Below, piece by piece: positions 1,743 through 10,229 of a stretch of 10,229 nt of DNA (position 1 is its first letter; each line of letters opens with the position of its first letter). Source of the DNA: Vitrella brassicaformis CCMP3155 (taxonomy: Eukaryota > Protista > Chromerida); assembly GCA_001179505.1 (NCBI GenBank), contig CDMY01000928.1:1-10229 (forward strand), given 5' to 3'. The position numbers and the translations under genes are program-made. The notes below the pieces were generated by a model, which worked only from the letters and a program-made list of their open reading frames with translations, did no database searches and was not told the origin of the DNA.

Positions 1743-4017
1743 ATGGCAGTGTCCCTCAGGGCCCTGCGTGTGCTCATCAGCATCGCATCCGTGTGGACCT
1801 CCCTGTTCCTCTTGTACATCTGGCTGCCTCGCTCCAAACTATGGACAGATCTCACCCGGCGGATCTCTCTCGCCTTCATCCATTACAGAATCAACCAATA
1901 CGGCATGCTCGTCCACCCCACGGGGTACCTGAGCGACACTGTGGAGCCCCAAATGTTCTATGGCGTCAAAGTCAACAACCGCACGGCAGAGTTCTTTGAT
2001 TCCGTGCCTGCGCTTGCCCGTCTGACGCCTCAGACGTGGGGCAGCTGGATTGAGGTCCTGAAGACGACCCTTCCTCCCTTGAAGGTCATGTATCTCCCAC
2101 TGCTCAATGCCGGCCGTCACGGTGCCGACGACACGGGTGTGCAAGGGGCTATCGCTGAAATCCGAGAACGATGCCAGAGGTGGGTGCATTGCGTCTCTGC
2201 CGAGGTGGCTGGCTGGCCGCACAGGCGGACATGCCAGCCTTCCGGCCGCAGGGCCAGCTTTGGCGCACAAGTCGCTTGTATTGTGTGTCCCTGTGGCTTC
2301 GCTCCTCCATTGCTGTGCGCTGGCTTGTGTGCGCAGGAGCAAGGATTGGGTGTTTGGGCAGTTCTGCACTGAGCTGCTGCCCTCTCTCATCGCAGGGAGC
2401 GCCAGCCCGCATCTCACAGTCGTCATAAATGTGCACGAGGCCGATTTCATCCTGGTAGGTGCAGACACACACAGGGGCTCATCGTCAAGGAGCGGCGATG
2501 GCGCATTGTACCAATGGTTGTGTTCGTGTGTCGTGCAGGTCGAGCGGTATCAGAAGATGCTTCAGCCGGTGAACAGGAGGCGCCGGCGCGAGGACCACCT
2601 GCGCTTTGAGCTGGAGGACCTCTATGAGCAGTGGACCCCAGAGGTGCAGGAGGCTTTCTTGCACAGACCTCAGGATTTCTTCTTCACGCTTGCCTCAGGT
2701 GGAATGCAGACAACAGACGAAAGAAAGCCATGGACATTGTCTGCTGTCCTCTCTGTGCGCGCAGGTGGGGCATCGGTTGAGACGGCCACATGGTCCACAA
2801 CACAGAGCAGACACCTGACTCCGATGTCGCTGGGGCTGTTTGCCGTGGAGGGCACCAAGCTGCGGCTGCTGGCCAAGAACAACACCATCAACCACGTTGT
2901 CATTCCTGGGTACATCAAGCGCGATGAGCTGAGGTTCATCAGCAGACAGCGCAGGGCGGTTGAGAGGCGGAGGCACTCTGTCTCAAGGACCAACCATCGC
3001 ACCTACCTGATGGTCTGCTGAAGGGGAGGCCGCATGACGAAAGACACGCTCAAGCAGAGTGCCCCCTGTTCGTTAGGTCTACTGCGGTTCGTTCAAGCGG
3101 TCTGCAGAGCGAAGTTTCATAAGAAGCTTGAAGCTGGTGTCCACGCAGAGAGAGGCGCAGCAGCAGTGGCAGGGCAGTCAGCCCGACCTGAGGGGCTTCT
3201 ATGCTGACATTCGAAAGAAACACAAATTCAAAGACAAGGTAGGCCAGGGGATGCATATGTCTCTCTCTGTGACTGAGAGTGTTGCCTCGTTGTGCTGCCG
3301 CCAGGATGCGGGCGAGTGGATATTTGTGGCCAAGTCGTGTCGGCGGAAGGCCACGGCGAGAATGTATGCCGCCACCAAATACTGCCTTGCACCAGGTCGG
3401 ACAAACAGACAGACAGACAGACAGACACGACAATCTGCATCGAGACTCGCCCTATCTGATGGCTGGCCGTGTTGTGAGCTCTCGCAGCCGGGAATTATCC
3501 ATGTACCAGCCGAATATACAAAGTGAGGAGAAATGTGCTGCATGCGCATTCTGGACTGTTTGATCTGATCTCCCAGAGCGTCGCTGCTGGCTGCGTCCCG
3601 CTCCTGCTCAACGATGGCTACATCCCCCCATTCAGGCACCTGCTCCCGTGGCATCACGTCCTGCTGCGAATCCCATTGGCCTCACTGAGACATGGCGCCC
3701 TGAACAGGCTCAGAAGACCCCACACACCCGGCCCCCTTGCGAGATTTGCCTTGCGGCTGCGGCACTTCCTGTGGGGAAGCAGGTGGGCGCGTGCACAGGC
3801 CGTAATGCTGCTGGAGATGCTGGACCGGGTCAGGGAGGATGAGCGCGAGAAGCTGCCGACGAGACAGGCATGGCTGAGGTGTATGGCGCCTTACATGGGT
3901 GTGAGGAGGTGGGTGGAGTTGCTGGTGCTAGAGATGAGGATACTGAAGGCTCAGAGGCAGACAGGACGGCCGGTTGACGAGCTGTTGAGGGATAATGCCA
4001 GAAGGCTTGACGCGTGA
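1743..4017 (+). CDS. Exostosin-family (GT47) glycosyltransferase, type II membrane protein; join(1743..2179,2337..2454,2539..2698,2765..3012,3077..3238,3305..3395,3488..3522,3577..4017), 563 aa
   Basis: N-terminal signal-anchor (VLISIASVWTSLFLLYIWL), with an in-frame stop upstream at 1695-1697. The spliced product reconstitutes exostosin motifs: RTYLM|VYCGSF, KYCLAP|AGNYPCTSRIYK|SVAAGCVPLLLNDGYIPPFRHLLPW (compare FCL.P.G......R..EA...GC.PV.......PF). All 7 introns are GT-AG and phases are consistent (total 1692 nt). The middle introns, especially 2699-2764, are less certain. Confidence 0.85.
3405..3424 (+). repeat. (ACAG)5 microsatellite in GT47 intron 6
   Basis: acagacagacagacagacag read directly. 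Confidence 0.9.
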
Positions 4018-4423
4018 GGGAGGATGCCCATGGTGCCGTGATCCCATCTATCCATCCATCCATCCATCAGTGCACATTTCACCTCACGCGGCCGACACAT
4101 GATTGGGTCACATCACACACACGCACTGAGTCGTCACTCATCGCATCACATCCTTCCCTACAGCAAAAACACCACACACACACACTCCTCTGTGTGTCCA
4201 GATATGTCTGTCTGTCCTGATTGATCTGCCTGCCTGCCTGCCAGCATGTCATCCACCCCTTCCACATGAACACACGCCTCCGCCCACTGAGAAACGACAC
4301 ATACAGATTGCCACTCAACTAACGAATTGCAAACACCTAACTGACCAATTTAATTACTGTCCAGCCCCGCAGCGCACAGCACACAGCACACAGACGTCCA
4401 CACACAGACATACGGTCGGTCGT

Positions 4424-4657
4424 TTACGCGAGCCGCTTGTAGTCAATGGGTCTCGATTTGTATTGCCGCCAGAAGATCAGCAGCACCGACACGACACCGA
4501 TCATCATCACACCACCTGCACACCCACACACAGGCAGCGAGACATACATACCATTTGCGCCAACCGTGTGCTGTGATGTGATGTGTTGTGTTGTGTGTCT
4601 GACTCACCTCCGAGAACGGCAGGGAAGCCCAGCGGGATGTCATCCATTTTAGACCTC
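4424..4657 (-). other. Last two exons of the GH35 gene: transmembrane helix plus cytosolic tail with a YxxPhi motif (DYKRL)
   Basis: Exon 4657-4608, intron 4607-4516 (GTGAGT..gtgtgcag) and exon 4515-4424 translate as RSKMDDIPLGFPAVLGGGVMMIGVVSVLLIFWRQYKSRPIDYKRLA* (TAA at 4426-4424). Confidence 0.8.
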
Positions 4658-7600
4658 CTGTGTTGCCGCCGCCCCCCCTGATCACCCTCCTCCCGCACCA
4701 CCCCCCCGCCACTCACGTACTTGACGCGCTTCTCCCTTCTCCTACCCTCATAACTCACGGCCCGGCTGCCTCGCCGCTCGAAGCCCTCCCACCCTTTCCC
4801 TCCCTTGTCTGCTTGTCGGACGTTAGTGGCGTCGGCAGAGAGGTCATCAGCCTCTAGAGGGATGCCCACAAGCGCCTGCTCCTTGACGAGCTGCTGGTCC
4901 TCTCCCTCCCCAGCACCCCTCAAGGAGAGCTCCTGCTGGCCGGGTATCCACTCGCCGGCTTTGATCTTGCCTGCGGCGTCCTGCTCGATTGGCTCGCTGA
5001 TGAGGCGGACCTGGAATGAGCATGGGGGCTGCTCGCATGAGGGGCCGTCTGTGTCTAGGAGGATGAGCTCGTTGGTGTCGTCGATGTGCAGGAGGCTGCC
5101 CGGCACGTACAGCCGTTTTTGTGGACCAGCCTGACAGACAGAGATACACACAACACAGAAGCGATCGGTGTGGAAGTCGTTTTCCCCCTGTCCCCCCCCG
5201 CCGCCCGCACGTACCTCATTCCAGTATCTGCCAAGGCTGAATCCGTTGATAAAGGCCACGCCCTTGCTCCACCCATTCTCAGACATGTCCAGAAAAGTAT
5301 CCGGCAGCCTGCCCTTGACTCGTGGGTACTTTCCTGGCAGCGATACGCTGCCCTTGAACAGCGACAGAGGCCCCACCTTCCCCTGCCGGTCTTGGTGGCT
5401 GGGTTTGTGGTACTTGAGGGATGACGTGAGGAACTCGAGTGTGAGGGGGAGGGGCGAGGTGGCCCAGCTGCCGGCGCCGGTGAGGGGCTGCTGGTCAAGG
5501 TACACCGACCCAGTGATGCCTGCACGGCACAGAAGAGCGCATTTGTGTGATCAGTATGGCATCGACACACTCATGCTCCCTCCCTCCGTCCCACATTCAC
5601 TCACCTTTCAGGTCGGTGAGCATCGGGTTTGAGTCTTCCGATGTGACGAATCTCCAGTTGACGTAGTTGATGCGACCCAAGCTCTCGACCACAACCAAGA
5701 GCTCGGGCGGGGAGCTCACGCCCTGTTCGTTCATTCAAGATATACCCAGACCACACCCAGAAGCACGAGAAAGGAAATCGTTACGTGTGATGTCTGTCGT
5801 GTGTGCTGGTTTGGAATGCCCTCATCTGAGTAGTGAGGCGACCTCTGTGGTTGGTGTAGGGATGGTGACGTTGATTGCCACACTGTCCGGCCCGCCCCCA
5901 CACTGATCGCTCTTCTCCCAATGTGACGGCGCGCTCATCTGCCGACTGGCAATGCCCTGCACAATCCACACAGAACACAGACACCGCGTGTGAGTGTGCC
6001 CCTCTTCCTCCCTGCCTCCCTCCTGTGCACGCAGCGGACCTGCATAACGCCATCGACGTACACGTGTGCCCGATCGTGCAGCCCACACAGATGCAGGACG
6101 TACTCGGTCTTGTCCTTGACCAGCCCCTGTGTAATGGTGTGTCTGTAGGCCACCAAGGATACGGGCGGCGACGTCTGCGGCAGCCCCAGCTCCTCGATCG
6201 CCGCCTCGAGAGTCATCGGGGTGTCACCTTTCAAGGATCGGATCGACGATGCGTTCCTGCAGACGAGCAGGAAGGACACATGCGCACGGTCTGTGTGCGT
6301 TGGCTGTTGGCTGTGGAGTGGTTGGCTTACAGAGCGTCGGTTAGGTGAGCGGCTTGCTCGAACGTGACGGTGCCATACTCGCCCGACTTGCGCCAGACGG
6401 GCGTCACACGCTCATTGGGCACGAGGAACTCCTGCAGCAACAGCCACTTCTCGCGAGGCCGACCTGCCACGAAACACACACACGCACAAGATGGAGAGAA
6501 GAAACAGACGGGGGGCGGGGCCATACCGGCCTCGCTGATGGGGGCGTCGTAGTCGTATGAAGTGGTGGTGGGCTGGTACACGCCCTGCCGGATGTTGGCA
6601 CCGTTCCACGCGTCGAAGTTGGTGCCGCCGTGCATCATGTAGAAGCTGATCGACGCACCGTAGTCGTTCCACAGAGTCTTGACCATCTTCATCAGATCCT
6701 GCACACACACATCCATCCATTCGTTCATGCCAGAAAGACGTAGGGTGGGCAGCATCCGTGTGTGTGTGTAGGTCACCTTTGAGTCCACTCTGTGATGCTC
6801 CTCACCCCAGTGATCGAACCACCCCGCGTAGAGCTCGGAGTTGACGAAAGGACCTGTGGGCTGGAAGCGTCGCCACAGTTGATGCAGCTCCTCCACGTTG
6901 GTCTTGGACGGACCGAAGTCGACTGCACAAATGTGTCATGTCACACAGCAATTGGCAGACAGTCAACAATGAATGCATAAGATACATACGCTGCGGTTGA
7001 GGTGGTGTGGTGTGGTGTGTGTGAGCTCACTGGTGGTGAATGAGGTGGGTGTGGATCCGCACTTGAGCATCCGCTCATCCGGCCCGTCCGTCGTATACAG
7101 CACCACGTCATCGCCCAAATGAGACCTAGATCAGATAGATGCACACATACACACACAACACCAACACGCACAGCACAGACACCAACCACATCAATGCCAT
7201 GCCGATCAGATCAACGAAACCACACACTCAACTTAACCGCCCACCCACCTCAGCAAGTCCTCGAGCGTCTTGAGGTAGTCCTTATCACACTCGCTGTAGC
7301 TCCCATACTCATTCTCTATCTGGACCATCAGTATGGGCCCGCCGTTGACGTAAAGCAGCGGCTTTACTCGCGGCAGGAGCTCCTCGAACCACTCCCGCAC
7401 CTCGTCCATGTAGCGCTTGTCTGACGACCTGATGCGGATGTCGGGGACCGTGAGCAGCCGGCTCGGCAGGCCACCGTAGTCCCACTCAGCGCAGATGTAC
7501 GGGCCAGGCCGCAGCAGCACGAACAGGCCCTCCTCCCCAGCCGCCTCAATGAAGTGCACGAGATCTTTGTCGCCAGTAAAGTCATACTCGTGTCGGTTGC

Positions 7601-7991
7601 CGGCGGCCCTGACCTCGTGGAAGTTCCATGGCACATACACCTGACACAAACAAATCAACACATCAATAGAGTGATTGAGTGCATCAGAGAACATGTGTGT
7701 GACCGGGAGGGAGCATTGATTGCCAAAACACCAGCCAGTAGTGACACCGCACACTGAACTGAATCCATCAGTCAGTACCTGAATGGCGTTGAGTCCCCCG
7801 TCGTGTATGAGCCGCATGAGAGGCCGCCAGTGCGACCTGGGTATGCGGCTGTACAGCACCTCGCCCGCAGCGTACTGGAACGGTTCGCCATCCAGCAGGA
7901 ACACGTCACTCTCGTGATCTATCCTGAAGGACGGCTCCGAGGCAGCGACAGCAAGGACCAAAACAACGTACAACACCCTGCAGGCTGCCAT
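4424..7991 (-). CDS. GH35 beta-galactosidase (GLB1-like) with signal peptide and C-terminal TM anchor; complement(join(4424..4515,4608..4657,4721..5130,5215..5519,5605..5722,5843..5956,6040..6256,6331..6463,6527..6698,6777..6922,7031..7125,7249..7640,7779..7991)), 818 aa
   Basis: Signal peptide MAACRVLYVVLVLAVAA. GH35 motifs: GLNAIQ|VYVPWNFHE, LRPGPYICAEWDYGGLP, GGPILMVQIENEYGSY (acid/base Glu at 7308-7310), LYTTDG, NSELYAGWFDHWG (nucleophile Glu at 6834-6836), YMMHGGTNF, TSYDYDAPISEAG, VESLGRINY, KGVAFINGFSLGRYW, GPQKRLYVP. Twelve GT-AG introns with consistent phases (2457 nt). An alternative in-frame ATG lies at 8012. Confidence 0.93.
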
Positions 7992-8105
7992 CGTGCTGAG
8001 ATGCCGCTTCATCTCCCGCGAAAGCTGAGCGGGCTTAAGCTCGCAATGGGGGGTGGGGGCGCGCGGCTTCCCCAGTCTCCGCTTCTTGGGGTCGATCTCT
8101 GGACC

Positions 8106-8655
8106 ATGCCGGACAGAAGTGAAGTAAGCACACGCATCAAACCGGGCCTGTGTCATGGATGATGGCCCATGACATCGTGTGGGAACAATGTTTCTGCAGC
8201 ACACGAGCGCGTACCGGGCTTCCACGGTTTCTGAAGGGTCGAAGGTGCTGCTGTGCTGCTTCCGCGACCGGCGAAGCCAGCTGTGGAGCTTTTGCTGGCT
8301 GAGCTGCTTCCTGATCTCCATCGGCCTCATCGTCGTGGGGGTCGTGATCAAGCTGAACTACCTGTGGATCCTCGGCCTCGCCGCGACCATAACAATCGTT
8401 GTGGCGTGGGCGTTCCGGCAATGGGGTGCGAGCGAAACTTGGTGGGCGGGCCCTACTGCGCCCGGCACCAGCGGTGCCCCCCTGGATCAGGTGCTGGACC
8501 GCCATGTGCGCAAGGAGATGGAGACCAAGACCAAGCAGGAAATGAAGCTCGAGGACCGCCGGATGAGCATGTACGCCAAGTTCAAGGAGAAAGTCAGGTG
8601 GGAGCGCCAGGCCACTGCAAGGCAGTCAAAGTCGTCGAGGCCGTCGCGGGCCTGA
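8106..8655 (+). CDS. Small two-transmembrane protein of unknown function; join(8106..8123,8200..8655), 157 aa (3' end may be spliced further)
   Basis: accATGccg at 8106; donor GAA|GTAAGC at 8124 and acceptor tttctgcAG at 8199 (76-nt phase-0 intron). Two hydrophobic segments (LWSFCWLSCFLISIGLIVVGVVI; LNYLWILGLAATITIVVAWAF) are followed by a charged helical tail (RKEMETKTKQEMKLEDRRMSMYAKFKEK). Codons are GC3-rich like the neighbouring genes. Confidence 0.72.
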
Positions 8656-9614: not shown

Positions 9615-10229
9615 CTATGTCTTGGGCTTCTTCTGGAAGAACGACCTGAGGTCTGTCTGCCCGGCCGGCCTCTTGCCTCCCCCGCCACCCGACCCGCCCC
9701 TCCCGCCCATCCCTCCCCTCCCGCCTCGACTCGCACTGCCACGCCCACTCTGCTGCTGCTGCTGCTGCTGCTGCGTTGGCTGCCTCACGGGAGCCCCCGT
9801 ACCATTCGCATCGTCACCGGCCGTCAAGTCGATCGCACCACTGCTGCTGCCATTGTTCTTGTTGCCGTTGTTCGCTGCAGCTGGTGCTGGTGCTGGTGCT
9901 GCAGAGCTGCTTTGGTTGTTGGCCGCAGGGGTCGGTTTGGGTGCCGGTTGGAAGAAGCTCTGGATGCCCTTCCACCCTCTGTGTGGCTGCGACCTGGTGG
10001 TCTTGGTGTCCTTCATGTCGACGGCCACGCGCTGACCGAAGTCGATGTGGTGGCCGGCGGGTGTGTGGGGCGTGTTGTCGAGGCAGAGGGTGACGGCGAT
10101 GTGGTCGCTGAACTTGGGGGGCGTGTAGCACATGCCGGTGTGAGGGGGGAGGAACTGCGTGTCGTATACCGGCTGGGAGGCATCGATCAGCCCGCCCCCA
10201 TCCCATGAGGGCGGGAGTGAATCGGCCTG
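9615..10229 (-). CDS. 3' part of an EEP / exonuclease III-AP endonuclease family protein (APE2-like); 5'-partial
   Basis: The frame is open from the window end (QADSLPPSWDGGGLIDASQPVYDTQFLPPHTGMCYTPPKFSDHIAVTLCLD) to TAG at 9617-9615. SDH followed by hydrophobic strand residues (10109-10101) is the terminal catalytic motif of DNase I-like EEP enzymes. The tail ends in the PIP box QTDLRSFF. The rest of the catalytic domain is outside the window, so the subfamily is inferred. Confidence 0.65.
   Translation of the reverse strand, partial: QADSLPPSWDGGGLIDASQPVYDTQFLPPHTGMCYTPPKFSDHIAVTLCLDNTPHTPAGHHIDFGQRVAVDMKDTKTTRSQPHRGWKGIQSFFQPAPKPTPAANNQSSSAAPAPAPAAANNGNKNNGSSSGAIDLTAGDDANGTGAPVRQPTQQQQQQQQSGRGSASRGGRGGMGGRGGSGGGGGKRPAGQTDLRSFFQKKPKT
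9750..9773 (-). repeat. (CAG)8 coding polyglutamine tract in the nuclease tail
   Basis: (ctg)8 on the + strand; translates as PT-QQQQQQQQ-SG in the 9615 frame. Confidence 0.93.

Follow-up and report, generated by a model that had tools for sequence, protein, structure and literature searches.

The closest described counterpart of the locus reported here is the lysosomal β-galactosidase GLB1 (3thc, 7kdv), together with its relative GLB1L. GLB1 is soluble, ends with its second beta-sandwich and is sorted via mannose-6-phosphate receptors. Other hydrolases travel attached to the membrane. Lysosomal acid phosphatase (ACP2/LAP) is a type I precursor with a YXXO motif in its short cytosolic tail, and its luminal enzyme is released by later proteolysis. 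Type I acid phosphatases with YXXO are found from Leishmania to humans (as discussed in PMC3423367). In Giardia, the membrane form of cathepsin C is an integral membrane protein whose delivery depends on AP1 (PMC3423367), and plasmepsins I and II of Plasmodium are integral membrane proenzymes that are cleaved free in the food vacuole (PMC2171955). Two tyrosine signals of proteins other than hydrolases are also relevant. Mutating Y, R or L in the YQRL of TGN38 abolishes its localisation to the TGN (PMC2119736), and sorting of Lamp1, which carries YQTI near the C-terminus of a short tail, is lost when the spacing of the motif is shifted by one residue (PMC2199866).

The window we analyzed, a whole contig of 10,229 bp from Vitrella brassicaformis CCMP3155 (G+C ∼58%), contains on its minus strand one multi-exon eukaryotic GH35 gene. 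Its product resembles GLB1 and GLB1L in its GH35 fold (aa 17–682, 38–40% identity), catalytic motifs and predicted signal peptide, but differs from soluble GLB1 in continuing for another 157 residues, made up of a linker, a helix and a tail. A paralogue in the same organism, CEL94206.1, has the same domains (56% identity) without helix or tail. Like ACP2/LAP, the protein has the predicted layout of a type I hydrolase precursor with YXXO in a short cytosolic tail, although the two enzyme families are unrelated. Four residues of its DYKRL (D, Y, R and L) recur in the SDYQRL of TGN38, and, as in Lamp1, the tail is short and the motif stands close to the C-terminus; both are motif matches only, with no homology. 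The tyrosine, at position 10 of the tail, lies at a greater distance from the membrane than that of the 11-residue Lamp1 tail. Giardia cathepsin C and the plasmepsins are comparable as protist digestive hydrolases delivered membrane-bound, though they belong to other enzyme families, and the plasmepsins are type II proteins anchored via a propeptide whereas the Vitrella protein appears to be type I.

The gene model and its last splice junction

Contigs of four public runs, here called X1 to X4, were aligned to window positions 3900–8500. Those of X3 and X4 are colinear with the genome, as expected of DNA; X3, in which a single contig spans the entire stretch, is possibly the source assembly. 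For X1 and X2 the public record gives RNA as a guess only, and their contigs skip nine GT-AG introns as joints. Because such joints are seen in X1 and X2 and in neither X3 nor X4, we conclude that X1 and X2 behave as cDNA. This evidence for splicing consists of assembled contigs rather than raw reads, and is silent on the abundance of the spliced form. The resulting RNA-guided model (Table 1) runs from an ATG at 7991 to a TAA at 4426–4424. All 11 of its introns are GT-AG, nine of them read directly from spliced X1/X2 contigs and the other two (7778–7641 and 6526–6464) inferred from contig pieces and splice-site sequence.

Table 1. Coordinates of the features of the Vitrella GH35 gene and its predicted product within the 10,229-bp window
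Feature	Position	Strand	Basis or remark
GH35 coding region	4424..7991	(-)	12 exons, 2,520 nt, 839 aa
GH35 exons 1–4	7991-7779, 7640-7249, 7125-7031, 6922-6777	(-)	RNA-guided
GH35 exons 5–8	6698-6527, 6463-6331, 6256-6040, 5956-5843	(-)	RNA-guided
GH35 exons 9–12	5722-5605, 5519-5215, 5130-4608, 4515-4424	(-)	RNA-guided
Predicted signal peptide MAACRVLYVVLVLAVAAS, aa 1–18	7938..7991	(-)	hydropathy, alignment start
GH35 catalytic and two beta-sandwich domains, aa 19–682, introns between	4990..7937	(-)	Pfam, phmmer
Linker, 117 aa (aa 683–799), G/R/E/Q/D-rich, sharing an exon with the end of the GH35 fold	4639..4989	(-)	composition
RRREKR, aa 765–770, multibasic stretch in linker	4726..4743	(-)	translation
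Predicted membrane helix part 1, aa 800–809 and first base of codon 810	4608..4638	(-)	3' end of exon 11
Final intron (92 nt), GTGAGT...GTGTGCAG, holding a CA-rich low-complexity tract	4516..4607	(-)	X1/X2 joints
Predicted membrane helix part 2, rest of codon 810 and aa 811–825, GVMMIGVVSVLLIFW	4469..4515	(-)	hydropathy, AlphaFold
Predicted cytosolic tail RQYKSRPIDYKRLA, aa 826–839, 14 residues	4427..4468	(-)	translation
Stop codon TAA	4424..4426	(-)	sequence
3' untranslated region, minimum extent	4076..4423	(-)	contig cover, X1 4076-4512 and X2 4096-4512

When exon 2 alone was searched against 1.84 billion representative proteins, the best match (P0001 in our sample) was a protein of 839 aa that is letter-for-letter the same as the RNA-guided model. 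This is CEM37061.1 (UniProt A0A0G4H0J4), named 'Beta-galactosidase', from Vitrella brassicaformis CCMP3155. Full-length searches used this public record, and the remaining profile and protein searches used single exons. It follows from this identity that the spliced C-terminus is already part of the public annotation; the architecture is present in the public gene model, unremarked.

At the last junction, the minus strand reads ...atcccgctgggcttccctgccgttctcggag/GTGAGT...GTGTGCAG/gtggtgtgatgatg... or, more widely, ...CTCGGAG/GTGAGTCA...GTGTGCAG/GTGGTGTG..., with slashes at the splice sites. The contigs show this junction as a joint from 4512 to 4605 that skips 92 nt between CT and AC (cut +3), which corresponds to an intron at 4607–4516 and a 4608/4515 junction. 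The joint is found in contigs of both X1 (short side 64 nt) and X2 (32 nt), and is absent from the DNA contigs of X3 and X4. Joining 4608 to 4515 encodes IPLGFPAVLGGGVMMIGVVSVLLIFW-RQYKSR-PIDYKRLA-stop, so that the helix and tail depend on this splice, which the contigs show to be real. The 4608/4515 junction had been proposed from the genomic letters in the earlier note, along with the view that the list of open reading frames misses the terminal exon and reads through into the intron instead. Both hold: the spliced contigs come from X1 and X2 and not from the DNA-type runs, and the ORF at 4507–5505 ends inside the intron. The same note spoke of two small terminal exons, which is right for the last one (4515–4424) and wrong for the penultimate one, which spans 5130–4608 (523 nt) and encodes the last part of the GH35 fold, all of the linker and the helix up to its tenth residue.

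The length of this penultimate exon follows from two observations. An in-frame intron of 63 nt at 4720–4658 on the minus strand (GTACGT...CACAG) would remove 21 residues and start the exon at 4657; we rejected it, since the X1 contig bearing the 4608/4515 splice stays colinear with the genome as far as 4668, 11 nt beyond the 4658 acceptor, and the public 839-aa model retains the 21 residues. The 818-aa model put forward previously must accordingly be replaced by one of 839 aa, the length of both the public protein and the RNA-guided model. Helix and tail are in frame with or without the 63-nt intron. Donors at 4758 and 4716 were also tried with the 4658 acceptor and discarded, as both bring GAG GTC TAA into frame.

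Short tracts of low complexity, among them CAGG-type and CA-rich ones, are present at 4225–4242, 4566–4599, 6702–6720 and 7002–7019, within the 3' UTR and introns. They are common to many unrelated contigs of the four runs, and hence give rise to false joints, with sides of 18–21 nt, in the DNA runs. Three introns on the minus strand (7641–7778, 6464–6526 and 5131–5214; 138, 63 and 84 nt) are stop-free and multiples of three in length, so plain ORF tracks run through them and overstate exon length, as in the 372-aa ORF at 7233–8351. An in-frame ATG at 8012 (minus strand), 21 nt before the annotated start, would lengthen the protein by MKRHLST ahead of MAACRV. The N-terminus is signal-peptide-like with either start, and the X1 RNA contigs reach only to 7941. 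Upstream of the start codon, an X2 contig over 8200–8500 could represent 5' UTR or the end of an upstream gene.

A GLB1-like enzyme with a C-terminal extension

The GH35 catalytic profile (PF01301) matches exons 1–2 with an E value of 4e-59 (201 bits, cut-off 27) and exons 4–6 with 2e-24. Of the two beta-sandwich domains, the GLB1 galactose-binding domain (PF21467) is matched at 3.7e-16 and the first all-beta domain (PF21317) at 2e-4, below the gathering score when single exons are searched; both are present in the precomputed annotation of the full protein. The best solved structures are those of mouse and human lysosomal β-galactosidase (7kdv, 3thc): a phmmer search of the PDB aligned 3thc/3wf3 over aa 17–682 (E 3e-125) and 7kdv with E 2e-133. 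In these alignments, QIENEYGSY stands opposite the QVENEYGSY of GLB1 (motif NEY) and NSELYAGWFDHWG opposite NSEFYTGWLDHWG of 7kdv (motif NSE-Y-GW). From what is known of GLB1, we take the glutamate of NEY to be the acid/base and that of NSE-Y-GW to be the nucleophile. Judged by these matches, the protein is a GLB1-like, lysosomal-type GH35 β-galactosidase that keeps both catalytic glutamate motifs. Its N-terminus is a predicted signal peptide: the Kyte-Doolittle 19-mer value at aa 1 is 1.88, the alignment to mature GLB1 starts at aa 17–18, and A-A-S fits the –3/–1 rule by eye.

Beyond the fold, the linker is of low complexity (43% G) and its AlphaFold pLDDT is 25–40. The multibasic RRREKR within this probably disordered segment could be a candidate processing site. 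The helix that follows, IPLGFPAVLGGGVMMIGVVSVLLIFW (aa 800–825, 26 residues), coincides with the Kyte-Doolittle 19-residue maximum of the whole protein (2.49 at aa 806). When aa 600–839 were folded by AlphaFold from the single sequence, the sole confident element was a helix at aa 805–830 (pLDDT 86–91). The tail has five basic residues and places YKRL (4441–4430, minus strand) at aa 835–838, with nine residues between W825 and Y835 and one residue between the motif and the C-terminus; the helix boundary is certain to ±1–2 residues. RRQHRRSK, on the luminal side of the helix, equals the cytosolic flank in basicity, which counts against the sorting reading developed below. The succession of hydrophobic helix, RQYKSR and PIDYKRLA that had been read from the genomic letters is thus confirmed by the splice, by hydropathy and by the AlphaFold helix. 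Given a signal peptide and one stop-transfer helix, the predicted topology is type I, with the enzyme lumenal or extracellular and the tail cytosolic. The type I architecture as a whole (predicted signal peptide, GH35 domains, linker, helix, DYKRL tail) is supported by the sequence, the RNA-derived contigs and the public model, and on the sequence and structure predictions the protein is probably laid out as a type I membrane protein.

To what extent is this extension shared? A word search with aa 640–839 among 5.8 billion proteins (E ≤ 0.01) matched only the protein itself, leaving residues 683–839 (157 aa) with no relative in that collection. A word search with exon 11 alone, with fragments of 96–304 aa allowed, found no relative or transcript-derived fragment. 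In the ESM Atlas, the extension had no usable match by features, and its structure matches all had TM < 0.35. We also examined a sample of 267 GH35 proteins, composed of the best 150 of 5,437 matches and the best 120 of 8,000 word-search matches, and hence a set of nearest relatives that does not survey the whole family. One of the 267, the Vitrella protein (P0001), combines a C-terminal membrane helix with a basic tail behind it; none of the other 266 does. Two candidates for a further anchored GH35 protein were dismissed: P0112 has a weak hydrophobic stretch and an acidic tail, and P0157, from amphioxus, has a hydrophobic C-terminus without a tail.

The closest relative is the Vitrella paralogue CEL94206.1 (A0A0G4EEU5; P0005), a protein of 711 aa with 56% identity. 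It has a signal peptide and ends 6 aa past the last aligned position of the fold, without helix or tail. Next come animal GLB1 and GLB1L, with 37–40% identity over most of the length, and there was no alveolate orthologue among the best matches. As far as databases show, then, the extension appears to be confined to one species. In the literature searched, we found no paper that names the accession and none that joins family 35, β-galactosidase and a C-terminal transmembrane segment. The impression that the architecture is unusual for GH35 is therefore borne out at one in 267 sampled nearest relatives. As for its novelty, the GH35 case is without parallel in the sample, while the principle of a hydrolase with a tyrosine signal of its own is already familiar from membrane-bound acid phosphatases.

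Proposed sorting by the tail and alternative readings

The reading we favor, to which we would give somewhat less than an even chance, is that of a type I enzyme of lysosomal type addressed by an AP-read YKRL without the need of a luminal receptor. The β-galactosidase domain would face the lumen and the tail the cytosol, where the mu subunit of an AP adaptor complex would recognise YKRL. The enzyme would in this way pass from the TGN or cell surface into the endosomal/lysosome-like system with no luminal receptor involved, whereas the soluble paralogue CEL94206.1 would take the receptor route. Cleavage in the linker, for example at RRREKR, might later release the enzyme from its anchor, as in lysosomal acid phosphatase.

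AP-dependent sorting through YKRL, which the earlier note had put in place of receptor-mediated sorting, is plausible on several grounds. The motif fits YxxPhi and shares Y, R and L with the YQRL of TGN38; Vitrella encodes all adaptin subunits, AP1–5 (PMC4501334); and a soluble sister copy, CEL94206.1, is what one would expect if two copies had diverged in targeting. One caveat here is that random 14-mers carry a YxxPhi motif by chance at a rate of ∼11%, and shuffled versions of the tail at 23%. The narrower YxRL occurs in 0.3% of random 14-mers, a figure to be read with the template having been picked after the sequence was seen. Lysosomal tyrosine signals typically sit at a close spacing to the membrane, of which tail position 10 is the outer edge. 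Protein databases yielded no orthologue of the extension in which the Tyr and Phi positions could be compared. A further evolutionary scenario goes beyond the sorting reading, and we consider it tentative and on the whole unlikely. Here, a gene would have been duplicated in the Vitrella lineage and one GLB1-like copy would have gained a 157-residue extension with no detectable ancestor, switching from receptor-mediated to self-addressed, AP-dependent delivery to a lysosome-like compartment, with later release at the multibasic site. It would be a natural and datable case of a soluble lysosomal hydrolase turning into a membrane-bound precursor, and the first such case in GH35.

An anchored enzyme need not be a lysosomal one. 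The protein may instead stay at the plasma membrane and trim galactans of the wall or extracellular space, the motif serving endocytic recycling only or having no role. Many GH35 enzymes, including plant BGALs, act on cell walls, YxxPhi also serves internalisation at the plasma membrane, and the soluble paralogue would be available for the lysosomal role. The convergent neighbour with a GT47 exostosin-like piece could be added to these points, although proximity to a GT47 gene says little about function in a eukaryote. Against a surface role, the catalytic part is nearest to animal lysosomal GLB1/GLB1L (38–40% identity) and not to wall-type BGALs of plants, and we regard this reading as unlikely, if still deserving of serious attention. 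Less probable again is a young, lineage-specific extension with no selected sorting role, in which a duplicated gene would have been extended at its 3' end into low-complexity sequence and have acquired a further exon, helix and YKRL being by-products of composition and chance. Such an origin would explain why residues 683–839 have no relative in 5.8 billion proteins and why the paralogue stops directly after the fold, and it fits the low complexity of the 43% G linker and the 11–23% chance rate of YxxPhi. The helix-coding part of exon 12 is 76% G+T and the adjoining 3' UTR 64%; however, hydrophobic codons are T-rich in any case, so G+T composition is not diagnostic of de novo origin. It also has to be set against this origin that the extension is precisely spliced and expressed, that the frame stays open over 114 G-rich codons (P about 0.02 from shuffles) and that a stop-transfer helix with a basic flank and Y-x-R-L is more specific (0.3%) than YxxPhi alone.

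Two other readings concern the structure of the message and of the C-terminus itself. Neither X1 nor X2 has an RNA-type contig over 4669–4862, and for this reason we infer, from the open reading frame and the public model, that a single mRNA carries both the GH35 exons and the membrane-helix exon. The 3' contig (4076–4668) could belong to a separate or alternative transcript, with the GH35 message ending or splicing within 4669–4862. This would accord with an ATG at 4647, just before the helix, and with the k-mer depth of the 3' contig, which is two to three times that of the GH35 contig (43.6 versus 15.4 in X1; 19.7 versus 9.9 in X2); a higher 3' depth is, however, usual in poly(A)-primed libraries. 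The frame is continuous across the linker and the sole open one, with 0 stops compared to 4 and 7 in the other frames and an open frame in ∼2% of shuffles, and the public annotation joins the two parts. On one side of the gap, contigs begin at 4863 in X1 and 4869 in X2; on the other, the X1 contig stops at 4668 beside a G7 run. The DNA contigs of X4 also break at 4854–4878, where alone they overlap. This suggests that the breaks at 4854–4878 and 4668–4680 are technical rather than biological, and assembly seems to be difficult in the G-rich stretch that encodes the linker (43% G on the coding strand). A separate transcript thus strikes us as improbable. Slighter still is the chance that the hydrophobic stretch is a GPI-attachment signal. 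It does lie near the C-terminus of a secretory protein, but GPI signals end in the hydrophobic stretch itself, and here the helix is followed by a charged tail of 14 residues, five of them basic.

If the tail works as we propose under the sorting reading, Vitrella would have two routes for one activity, with a soluble copy and a self-addressed membrane copy. Chromerids are free-living relatives of apicomplexan parasites, whose endosomal system became invasion organelles, and the protein would provide a simple handle on endolysosomal sorting in chromerids. The short tail might also be usable as a candidate targeting tag that can be moved to other proteins. In practice the weight of the case is modest: acid phosphatases and plasmepsins already illustrate the principle, the gene model is public and the extension is, as far as databases show, limited to one species.

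Neighboring genes

Downstream of the GH35 gene, an ORF piece on the plus strand (3523–4017) gives a weak match, below the cut-off, to the C-terminal end of exostosin GT47 (PF03016, E 8.7e-05). The GT47-like gene is convergent with the GH35 gene, and their 3' ends lie within ∼60 nt of each other, the GH35 3' UTR extending at least to 4076; no X1 or X2 contig covers 3900–4053. At the other end of the window, a minus-strand frame (9630–10,229) is open at the contig end and encodes a C-terminus rich in Q and RGG that matches no Pfam family. Finally, a 270-aa ORF on the plus strand at 502–1314 matches the YGGT family (PF02325, E 1.1e-06, 29.4 bits, cut-off 27), whose members are membrane proteins characteristic of plastids and cyanobacteria, in keeping with a photosynthetic host.
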